Source: Macrostomum lignano
Lineage: Eukaryota
Length of the DNA stretch: 64,000 nt
Assembly: GCA_002269645.1 (NCBI GenBank)
Contig: NIVC01001922.1
Location: 62,001-126,000 of the forward strand
Reading direction: 5' to 3'
Positions within the stretch are counted from its first letter, which is position 1. Every line of letters begins with the position of its first letter. The notes under the pieces were generated by a model that searched no databases, was not told the origin of the DNA, and worked only from the letters and a program-made list of their open reading frames with translations. This document shows, piece by piece, positions 26,128 through 63,929 of the stretch. A program made the position numbers and the translations under genes.

Positions 26128-29100
26128 ATGGAGTCGTGGAGTCCCGAGGAGACCTACCTTGAAGGCTTTCGGTTCGTTCTGTTCGAGCTGTGGTGGACGC
26201 CCAGGGGTTCCGCGACCGGCTGCACTCAGCTCGCATTGAGAAGCGACGCTAGGGTCTCCATCATGGAATGCTCAGACTCGCAGCTGTGAGTGTCTGTGAA
26301 CTTAAATTGATTTTTTGTATTTCTCTGTGTGCCTGCCCCACACTTGTCTTTTTGTCTGTGAAAAATAACTCTGGGTCTGAAGAGCACATAGAAAAGAAAT
26401 TACATTTGTCACACGTTCTCCATGGCACCCATTCTATTACAGTGGCACCCATTCTATTACAGTGGCACCCATTCTATTACAGTGGCACCCATTCTATTAC
26501 AGTGGCACCCATTCTATTACAGTGGCACCCATTCTATTACAGTGGCACCCATTCTATTACAGTGGCACCCATTCTATTACAGTGGCACCCATTCTATTAC
26601 AGTGGCACCCATTCTATTACAGTGGCACCCATTCTATTACAGTGGCACCCATTCTATTACAGTGGCACCCATTCTATTACAGTGGCACCCATTCTATTAC
26701 AGTGGCACCCATTCTATTACAGTGGCACCCATTCTATTACAGTGGCACCCATTCTATTACAGTGGCACCCATTCTATTACAGTGGCACCCATTCTATTAC
26801 AGTGGCACCCATTCTATTACAGTGGCACCCATTCTATTACAGTGGCACCCATTCTATTACAGTGGCACCCATTCTATTACAGTGGCACCCATTCTATTAC
26901 AGTGGCACCCATTCTATTACAGTGGCACCCATTCTATTACAGTGGCACCCATTCTATTACAGTGGCACCCATTCTATTACAGTGGCACCCATTCTATTAC
27001 AGTGGCACCCATTCTATTACAGTGGCACCCATTCTATTACAGTGGCACCCATTCTATTACAGTGGCACCCATTCTATTACAGTGGCACCCATTCTATTAC
27101 AGTGGCACCCATTCTATTACAGTGCCACCCATTCTATTACAGTGGCACCCATTCTATTACAGTGGCACCCAGTCTATTACAGTGGCACCCATTCTATTAC
27201 AGTGCCACCCATTCTATTACAGTGGCACCCATTCTATTACAGTGGCACCCATTCTAATAAAGTGGCACCCAGTCTATTACAGGGGCACCCATTCTAATAA
27301 AGTGGCACCCATTCTATTACAGTGGCACCCATTATATTACAGTGGCACCCATTCTATTACAGTGGCACCCATTCTATTACAGTGGCACCCATTCTATTAC
27401 AGTGGCACCCAGTCTATTACAGTGGCACCCATTCTATTACAGTGGCACCCATTCTATTACAGTGGCACCCATTCTATTACAGTGGCACCCATTCTATTAC
27501 AATGGCACCCATTCTATTACAGTGGCATCCATTCTATTACAGTGGCACCCAGTCTATTACAGTGGCACCCAGTCTATTACAGTGGCACCCATTCTATTAC
27601 AGTGGCACCCATTCTATTACAGTGGCACCCATTCTATTACAGTGGCACCCATTCTATTACAATGGCACCCATTCTATTACAGTGGCATCCATTCTATTAC
27701 AGTGGCACCCAGTCTATTACAGTGGCACCCAGTCTATTACAGTGGCACCCATTCTATTACAGTGGCACCCATTCTATTACAGTGGCACCCATTCTATTAC
27801 AGTGGCACCCATTCTATTACAGTGGCACCCATTCTATTACAGTGGCACCCATTCTATTACAGTGGCACCCATTCTATTACAGTGGCACCCATTCTATTAC
27901 AGTGGCACCCATTCTATTACAGTGGCACCCAGTCTATTACAGTGGCACCCATTCTATTACAGTGGCACCCATTCTATTACAGTGGCACCCATTCTATTAC
28001 AGTGGCACCCATTCTATTACAGTGGCACCCATTCTATTACAGTGGCACCCATTCTATTACAGTGGCACCCATTCTATTACAGTGGCATCCATTCTATTAA
28101 AGTGGCACCCATTCTATTACAGTGGCACCCATTCTATTACAGTGGCACCCATTCTATTACAGTGGCACCCATTCTATTACAGTGGCACCCATTCTATTAC
28201 AGTGGCACCCATTCTATTACAGTGGCACCCATTCTATTACAGTGGCACCCATTCTATTACAGTGGCACCCATTCTATTACAGTGGCACCCATTCTATTAC
28301 AGTGGCACCCATTCTATTACAGTGGCACCCATTCTATTACAGTGGCACCCATTCTATTACAGTGGCACCCATTCTATTACAGTGGCACCCATTCTATTAC
28401 AGTGGCACCCATTCTATTACAGTGGCACCCATTCTATTACAGTGGCACCCATTCTATTACAGTGGCACCCATTCTATTACAGTGGCACCCATTCTATTAC
28501 AGTGGCACCCATTCTATTACAGTGGCACCCATTCTATTACAGTGGCACCCATTCTATTACAGTGGCACCCATTCTATTACAGTGGCACCCATTCTATTAC
28601 AGTGGCACCCATTCTATTACAGTGGCACCCATTCTATTACAGTGGCACCCATTCTATTACAGTGGCACCCATTCTATTACAGTGGCACCCATTCTATTAC
28701 AGTGGCACCCATTTTATTACAGTGGCACCCATTCTATTACAGTGGCACCCATTCTATTACAGTGGCACCCATTCTATTACAGTGGCACCCATTATATTAC
28801 AGTGGCACCCATTCTATTACAGTGGCACCCATTCTATTACAGTGGCACCCATTCTATTACAGTGGCACCCAGTCTATTACAGTGGCACCCATTCTATTAC
28901 AGTGGCACCCATTCTATTACAGTGGCACCCAGTCTATTACAGTGGCACCCATTCTATTACAATGGCACCCATTCTATTACAGTGGCATCCATTCTATTAC
29001 AGTGGCACCCAGTCTATTACAGTGGCACCCAGTCTATTACAGTGGCACCCATTCTATTACAGTGGCACCCATTCTATTACAGTGGCACCCATTCTATTAC

Positions 29101-63929: not shown

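Follow-up and report, generated by a model that had tools for sequence, protein, structure and literature searches.

A giant, lineage-restricted gene of Macrostomum lignano that probably encodes a single-pass surface protein of about 4,000 amino acids

The stretch of Macrostomum lignano DNA analysed here (contig NIVC01001922.1, positions 62,001 to 126,000; 64,000 nucleotides (nt), called the window below) carries a giant multi-exon gene on its + strand, from about 26.1 to 64.0 kb. A model that had seen only the letters of the DNA (the sequence-only reading) had described this gene as a chain of exons, joined in frame with matching splice phases, from 26128 to 63929. This observation is right and well supported, as both the protein fragments present in databases and a gene finder bear it out. 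With a probability of roughly 0.6, we interpret the interval 26.1-64.0 kb as most of one real, very large M. lignano gene, the product of which would be a tethered surface protein, a type I membrane protein of ~4,000 amino acids (aa) found so far only in this species.

Three UniProt fragments of M. lignano, P0003 (A0A1I8JQ18), P0001 (UniRef A0A1I8IT96, 1,809 aa) and P0004 (A0A1I8IX28, 1,111 aa), tile the window from 31.5 to 63.9 kb on the + strand, with identity at or near 100% inside exons. P0001 and P0003 were among three proteins, all of M. lignano, retrieved with a query of concatenated non-repetitive + strand open segments from 34.6-49.6 kb, and P0004, together with a further fragment, P0005, with downstream open segments as query. 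P0003 spans the tandem-repeat exon and the three exons after it. P0001 maps residue-for-residue on 40003-56665, while P0004 maps on 56365-63928 and then runs on; the exon at 56365-56660 is common to these two, so that the models overlap. None of the database fragments has a start or stop codon, and their ends are assembly or prediction breaks. Paralogous copies of the gene are present as A0A1I8IPX5, A0A1I8F6C9 and P0005, and M. lignano has two to three near-identical copies in all (P0001/P0002; P0004/P0005/P0006). The three tiling entries of UniProt/WormBase ParaSite, with exons identical to the window, stem from the same gene or from near-identical copies. They contain frameshift artefacts, and none of them covers all ~4,000 aa or states the topology. 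The six fragments (the gene and its paralog copies) bear six unrelated automatic names, PDDEXK_1, VWFD, FH2, VPS13, ANF_receptor and SEA, none of which was reproduced in a Pfam hmmscan of P0001-P0006, and these names were discarded as evidence. Nothing specific turned up in the literature under the fragment accessions or for Macrostomum together with SEA or mucin.

The junctions of P0001 were determined by testing every GT/GC...AG pair for exact reproduction of the protein. Its 22 exons (40040-56532) were reproduced exactly and 21 junctions were uniquely resolved, all GT-AG with a GTGAGY / YAG flavour. The same procedure resolved P0004 junctions at 56660/58200, 59945/60235, 60320/60889, 61028/62398, 62507/62609 and 62697/63778, again all GT-AG. 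Codon log-odds and splice matrices taken from the 22 P0001 exons were used in a gene finder, a phase-aware dynamic programme run over 26-64 kb. It recovered 21/22 training exons, scored untrained exons at 84, 26, 28, 62, 71 and 81, and produced a chain that begins at 26122 and ends at 63929 (26128 and 63929 in the sequence-only reading). As a strand control, the best + chain over 34500-64000 reached 1500, compared to 551 for the best minus-strand chain. Gene-finder exons of 33-46 nt within tandem repeats (35419, 35761, 36037, 49583 and 61482 among them) were rejected as artefacts, and the frame of the repeat exon was set by hand, the gene finder having picked a wrong frame there. This leaves 36-37 credible exons and ~3,470-3,590 codons in the window, near to but lower than the first claim of ~39 exons and over 3,700 aa. 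The expected continuation of the gene beyond the window was found, as exon 63778-63929 is followed by a donor GTGAGT at 63930 and P0004 has ~547 further residues. All seven peptides quoted at the outset lie in + strand reading frames at the places given for them. The exons and associated open frames are as follows.

24825-24864 (+): candidate signal-peptide exon (speculative), ATG then MGAQRCCIWLLLA; donor CAG/GTAAGT, phase 1, donor score 6.5
26128-26285 (+): first coding exon of the sequence-only reading, ATG at 26128, MESWSPEETYLEGFRFVLFELWW...; gene-finder score 18.6; alternative acceptor 26165; no database model
31477-31522 (+): small exon 2, 46 nt, donor GTAATT; gene finder; P0003 starts here in a different frame
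31952-34406 (+): repeat exon, 818 codons; P0003; sole frame open throughout
34738-35100 (+): exon starting CPYLTIITRRKFTVLLSI...; gene-finder score 84.3; P0003
35177-35352 (+): exon containing CPYVQENKERIKLQMTVEL; P0003 exact over 35176-35352; gene finder
36534-36786 (+): exon ...NGDHYYTMHHKNNAFELEVLGQKVM...VFFLRLSNVRIS; P0003 and gene finder; acceptor 36534 or ~36549
38080-38317 (+): exon LPIIVACMDYLQEVPYPDRKFF..., sole bridge between P0003 and P0001; gene-finder score 62.2, phases fit
40042-40223 (+): exon SNVTFAPDKDEASTNLRALF...; P0001 and gene finder
41618-41846 (+): exon EKQIFRTVKYKYKNYF...DEDEC; P0001 exact, GT-AG
42224-42616 (+): 131-aa exon RSQDRIEFTAVFTL...; P0001 exact; first of three similar-sized exons with phase-2 introns
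43014-43448 (+): 145-aa exon DATGLAFKANYVLRS...; P0001 exact
43840-44280 (+): 147-aa exon GSQLQFRTQYTIQS...; P0001 exact
45161-45464 (+): exon RQQITLSYVLMRD...; P0001 exact
45715-46071 (+): exon LSSLDSSRYRIGRK...; P0001 exact
46465-46729 (+): exon LVPAFDPARRSNQF...; P0001 exact
47759-47877 (+): exon ILDPVEMSEFIPPP...; P0001 exact
47949-48025 (+): exon ISDAFYDKARTFTLNF...; P0001 exact
48129-48331 (+): exon NREREDGSQSTYINIEN...; P0001 exact
48677-49135 (+): 153-aa exon with DCGQTSRRVKFLLMLRL...GVVQVDYNLL; P0001 exact; module used for the second AlphaFold2 prediction
49288-49415 (+): exon VYDRCSFSRHFRVLQ...; P0001 exact
50772-50863 (+): exon VRTIFILKLSGIQIYSIV...; P0001 exact
50931-51082 (+): exon GDSELSFSISYELIAS...; P0001 exact
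51169-51240 (+): exon MLNVKQNGIHCISN...; P0001 exact
51674-51861 (+): exon with RQVPIRHNFVLQVEADF; P0001 exact
53088-53176 (+): exon LALTFDDRITPGIQ...; P0001 exact
53256-53428 (+): exon SRSSSKLQLAVETYY...; P0001 exact
53839-54142 (+): exon IWNPDCSKLGASNPG...; P0001, with a small internal difference at residues 1531-1533
54729-55161 (+): exon with the RRRR site and TCGFSHQVRLTLVL; P0001 exact
56365-56660 (+): exon IELAYISVTTHAVEF...; overlap of P0001 and P0004
58200-58495 (+): exon RSLHRLRLTAKLLGILQ...; gene-finder score 70.6; donor 58496, or 58486 in P0004
59483-59945 (+): exon ...TPEQLRLRLFEDSL...; gene finder and P0004; acceptor uncertain; 1-bp deficit at ~59913
60235-60320 (+): exon LIHIVNSEAHTLVVVPAETV...; P0004 and P0005 exact, GT-AG
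60889-61028 (+): exon LINLRYQIVMRRGGLSAVTV...; P0004 exact, GT-AG
61763-62128 (+): optional Thr/Ser/Ala-rich ('mucin-like') open frame; acceptors 61763/61841/61901 pair in phase with donors 62108 or 62129
62398-62507 (+): exon AQVRIRHLAIVEIRSQLKNWNSTS...; P0004 exact, GT-AG
62609-62697 (+): exon IRQCYYFGSEHQALKLGV...; P0004 exact, GT-AG
63778-63929 (+): last in-window exon ATFLQFKAKYSLSVSNASV...LLHNIE; P0004 and P0005; donor GTGAGT at 63930

Only one frame is open across the whole repeat exon (31952-34406). It encodes ~35 copies of a GGRGGSAGSSLDGPTG-type unit and then ~19 copies of PVDQPAGP, with tandem-repeat periods of 48/45 and 24 nt in the DNA. The encoded region contains 32% G, 14.5% S, 14% P and 4.8% T and has a net charge of -37. 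Its donor GTGAGT at 34407 joins acceptor 34738 in phase (...EVGQNL-N-CPYLTIITRR). Furin-type basic sites are found just before the repeats (RVRR and RAKR, 32000-32130) and in the middle of the ectodomain (RRRR, 54950-54975). The 'mucin' segment of the sequence-only reading corresponds to a 154-codon Thr/Ser/Ala-rich open frame at 61708-62169, which has no tandem repeats at the DNA level. In-phase splice sites would allow it to insert a mucin-like cassette of 70-120 aa, but P0004 skips the frame.

The C-terminus lies beyond the window and was read from P0004. A transmembrane (TM) or glycosylphosphatidylinositol anchor had been suggested as something to look for downstream, and a TM helix was indeed found there. 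P0004 ends with ...QQKPPSSGE-VLLLGVGLGVVSAAGAVTAIAICLYLAW-RLRSWRRNRQRLR and a Ser-rich remainder of ~60 residues carrying NPRF, where VLLLGVGLGVVSAAGAVTAIAICLYLAW is the single TM helix and RLRSWRRNRQRLR a basic stop-transfer sequence, giving a tail of ~75 aa. The TM 19-mer has a Kyte-Doolittle mean of 2.22 and is the sole segment above 1.7 in the assembled 4,017 aa; the second-highest 19-mer (1.67) lies across a junction made during assembly of the protein. This C-terminus, helix and tail, is common to P0004, P0005 and P0006. The combination of a TM helix, a basic stop-transfer sequence and a tail thus indicates a type I membrane protein of ~4,000 aa. According to the positive-inside rule, the basic flank of a TM helix faces the cytoplasm. 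Since the C-terminal flank is arginine-rich, the tail would be cytoplasmic and the ~3,900 preceding residues extracellular. The surface role first proposed from the letters is strengthened by this anchor. In addition, the basic sites and the NPRF motif of the tail suggest, as sequence motifs, that the protein may undergo proteolytic processing and endocytic or adaptor binding.

Between the repeats and the anchor lies an ectodomain of ~3,000 aa with an ordinary composition (L 10.7%, R 8.7%, Cys 1.1%). By eye, many stretches of 100-150 aa read as strand-helix-strand-strand-helix-strand, and it is from this pattern that the idea of modules arose: recurring units of ~110-130 aa, each opening with a Cys-containing linker and a basic, alternating-hydrophobic strand. 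In its full form, this explanation holds that the ectodomain is made of ~20-25 hyper-diverged SEA/ferredoxin-like modules, often preceded by a Cys linker, and that the protein is a flatworm analogue of MUC16-type mucins. The architecture is parallel (N-terminal low-complexity repeats, long ectodomain, single TM helix, short tail). Three exons in a row (131, 145 and 147 aa) have phase-2 introns on both sides and align in register (IEFTAVFTLS / LAFKANYVLRS / LQFRTQYTIQS), with a non-significant z of ~1.7-1.8, and the low-confidence AlphaFold2 trace shows about two helices per ~140 aa. Nevertheless, the tests gave no sign of a repeat or a period. No internal repeat was found when 130-aa windows were compared with the protein itself by phmmer, and jackhmmer started from 9 putative-module seeds recruited nothing from the protein, its reverse or 18 shuffles. 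With a hand-aligned strand-helix hidden Markov model of five consecutive modules, the best match outside the training set reached 1.9 bits and decoys up to 2.4. Autocorrelation of amphipathicity (helix vs strand, lags 40-300) gave a maximal z of 1.45, against a 95% null of 3.06, and 17 modules cut out by hand could be aligned by MAFFT only with a great many gaps.

The individual marks of the proposed units fared no better. Alternating-hydrophobic strands numbered 28, compared to 26.4±4.3 in shuffles. No enrichment of Cys was detected near exon starts (p 0.12-0.21), and a Cys followed by a basic-alternating strand showed a marginal association for one of three patterns (p 0.02). N-glycosylation sequons, said to be frequent, occurred 20 times with 14.8±3.5 expected and are not enriched. 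The 'Cys-linked SEA-like module' description is an unproven hypothesis, with its statistical signals at chance level.

The SEA domain is a ~120-aa beta-alpha-beta-beta-alpha-beta (ferredoxin-like) fold, and in many SEA domains, but not all, the beta2-beta3 turn carries a G/S[VI][VI][VI] motif for autoproteolysis. In Pfam-A hmmscan at E<=1 or E<=10, no family was found for P0001-P0004, and P0005 and P0006 gave sub-threshold, chance-level matches only (Trp_oprn_chp, PEX14-like). Consistent with what had been noted from the letters, Pfam found no vWD/C8/TIL, C-lectin or EGF signature in any model. When 20 modules were scanned singly at E<=10, SEA (PF01390) was again not matched, and scattered unrelated families appeared at E 0.025-0.22. 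RING and UQ_con were detected in the neighbouring genes as a positive control for these scans, from which very weak SEA matches could escape since HMMER filters drop most matches above E ~0.1. A regular expression G[ST][VIL][VIL][VIL] had no match over the 4,017 aa, the nearest look-alike being TGVVQVDY in exon 48677-49135, and the modules, when aligned by Smith-Waterman to the SEA domain of MUC1 (a query identical to PDB 2ACM/6BSB), gave z <= 1.8.

The sole external hint of SEA is the UniProt name of P0006, a garbled paralog fragment called 'SEA domain-containing protein'. It was given little weight because the names of the other fragments disagree with one another and none was returned by Pfam. 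On the other hand, known SEA domains are barely alike: in a PDB search, the MUC1 SEA domain matched that of MUC16 at E 0.014. As true SEA domains barely detect each other, the sequence-level negatives are compatible with a SEA fold. Taken together, we consider a chain of SEA modules possible but unlikely. Somewhat more doubtful still is the related idea that ~20-25 modules have diverged past sequence detection, making the protein an independently or very fast-evolved counterpart of MUC16, or the bearer of a new modular fold, and in either case a giant, tethered and lineage-specific protein of the Macrostomum glycocalyx.

Searches for relatives pointed to M. lignano only. A phmmer search with 1,200 aa against 1.84 billion cluster representatives returned the paralog P0002 and nothing else, word-indexed protein searches returned M. 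lignano models only, and among PDB sequences P0001 and P0004 had either no match or matches at chance level. The phmmer and PDB searches thus returned no well-characterised ortholog, in line with the uncharacterised status first assigned to the gene. The statement that it could not be assigned to a known gene holds in this sense, but the gene was already in UniProt as the unnamed fragments A0A1I8JQ18, A0A1I8IT96 and A0A1I8IX28. It is a lineage-restricted orphan, present in that database as fragments with misleading names.

We favour a tethered cell-surface protein of the glycocalyx or apical matrix as the most likely role. From its N-terminus, which probably carries a signal peptide, the protein would pass through a short region with the furin-like sites RVRR and RAKR into ~750 aa of G/S/P-rich tandem repeats, predicted to be disordered and encoded by a single exon. 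There would follow the ~3,000-aa non-repetitive ectodomain, of apparently mixed alpha/beta character and with no recognisable domain, then an acidic, proline-rich juxtamembrane stalk, one TM helix and the basic, Ser-rich cytoplasmic tail of ~75 aa with NPRF. In such an arrangement, the repeats may form a flexible and probably glycosylated brush that the long folded stalk keeps far off the membrane, where it could act as a spacer, a barrier or an adhesion modulator.

Several observations weigh against this interpretation. The first exon of the sequence-only reading (26128, MESWSPEETYLEGFRFVLFELWW...) has no signal peptide of its own, and when 23.0-32.0 kb was scanned, no convincing combination of an ATG with a downstream hydrophobic stretch and donor turned up for phase 0 or 2. 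Exon 24825-24864 does splice in phase, in the frame of that first exon, to acceptor 26165, giving the signal-peptide-like MGAQRCCIWLLLAGFRFVLFELWW. Because it was found by searching, this exon is a lead only and not independent evidence; with nothing else supporting it, its assignment is speculative. The repeat region, at ~19% S+T, is no classical Pro/Thr/Ser (PTS) mucin domain. A Cys content of 1.1% and unenriched sequons argue, weakly, against a classical disulfide-rich and heavily N-glycosylated ectodomain. AlphaFold2, used in the absence of alignment depth, gave a mean predicted local distance difference test (pLDDT) score of 30.7 for 1,200 aa and 32.0 for a 142-aa module (48709-49134). 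Moreover, the exon chain was built from genomic sequence and database models. Two local weaknesses of this chain each open a different explanation.

The first concerns the interval 36.8-40.0 kb, which separates the part covered by P0003 from that covered by P0001 and is bridged by a single gene-finder exon (38080-38317) that no database model was found to cover. As the database fragments P0003, P0001 and P0004 are also separate, two or more adjacent genes might have been joined by prediction, such as one for a secreted repeat protein (31.5-36.8 kb) and another for a membrane protein (40-64+ kb). Such a concatenation appears improbable, since the fragments, as noted, have neither start nor stop codons and are cut by breaks in assembly or prediction, reading phases agree on both sides of every gap, P0001 and P0004 overlap, and the parts lie on one strand with common codon usage. 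Neither an internal signal-peptide start nor a terminal exon was seen between them.

The second is at ~59913 (GTGCCAGAGACC, 59905-59920), where the window is 1 bp short compared to P0004 and P0005 (...RRVP-RDRLTEFWTNM), so that exon 59483-59945, as written, is not in frame with both neighbours. With two to three near-identical copies in M. lignano, the copy in the window could be a decaying paralog, that is, a pseudogene with a frameshift. We find this improbable as well: errors of this kind, one indel in a short homopolymer (CC or A run), are typical of long-read assemblies, and the remaining ~10 kb of coding sequence are stop-free and match the models. A homopolymer assembly error is the simplest explanation of the missing base.

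Other genes share the window with the giant gene. A multi-pass membrane RING-finger protein (zf-C3HC4, zf-rbx1) is encoded at 7890-12483 (+), and a ubiquitin-conjugating enzyme (E2; UQ_con, E 4.7e-41) with a UBA-like C-terminus at 14586-15125 (+). Between the E2 gene and the giant gene lies an intron-less open reading frame of 385 aa (21935-23092, -), which contains several hydrophobic segments and matched no Pfam family. Minisatellites crowd the introns and the intergenic DNA, including a 20-bp unit x227 in the first intron of the giant gene (26423-30970), a 31-bp unit x124 upstream (16102-19957) and ~30 further arrays, many with periods of 13-55 bp. Several of these arrays have no closed frame among the three and look like coding sequence.

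If the single-gene interpretation is correct, the product would be one of the largest proteins anchored in the membranes of a flatworm model organism. It escapes annotation by domains or homology and is split in public databases into misnamed fragments. A full-length model would mend this annotation and provide a candidate for the epidermal or another surface coat of M. lignano, while the gene would serve as a test case of how far modular extracellular proteins can diverge. The surface coat of this animal bears on the model of its temporary adhesion, in which adhesive proteins interact with the glycocalyx (PMC6410801).

These adhesive proteins are themselves giants: Mlig-ap1 (5,407 aa) and Mlig-ap2 (14,794 aa) have large repetitive regions, and BLAST finds no homologs of them beyond the lineage (PMC6410801). 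Mlig-ap1 combines Lys/Arg (KR)-rich regions with C-lectin, vWD/C8/TIL and 17 EGF modules, and Cys makes up 11% of its domain region. In Mlig-ap2, vWD, TIL and LDLr occur together with TSP1 repeats and with 46 repeats that are 255 or 221 aa long; both proteins are Cys-rich secreted gland products (PMC6410801). The protein described here shares with them the species, the giant size, a large repetitive region and the absence of outside homologs. In contrast to both, it carries a TM anchor, has 1.1% Cys and none of their domains, and its ectodomain is free of long near-identical repeats. Because the architectures differ, the protein was judged to be neither Mlig-ap1 nor Mlig-ap2.

A closer parallel is offered by the membrane-tethered SEA mucins (MUC16/CA125, MUC1, MUC3, MUC12, MUC13 and MUC17), with which the giant protein shares type I topology, one TM helix, placed C-terminal to the ectodomain in the predicted orientation, and a short tail. 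MUC16 is a type I protein with one TM helix, a short tail, a very long ectodomain and an N-terminal repeat region in one large exon. The giant protein likewise combines a long ectodomain with N-terminal low-complexity repeats in one large exon, and possibly has many alpha/beta modules of ~100-150 aa. Unlike MUC16, it has no Pfam SEA match in 20 modules, no G/SVVV site and no sequence homology, and while the repeats of MUC16 are clearly alike, its own modules show no mutual similarity above decoys. Its tandem repeats are G/S/P-rich and, by composition, do not form the long PTS tandem-repeat domain typical of tethered mucins. Lacking a SEA profile match, mutually similar repeats and a PTS domain, it was not classed as a member of this group. 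By analogy of architecture, it may nonetheless work like a MUC16-type tethered mucin.

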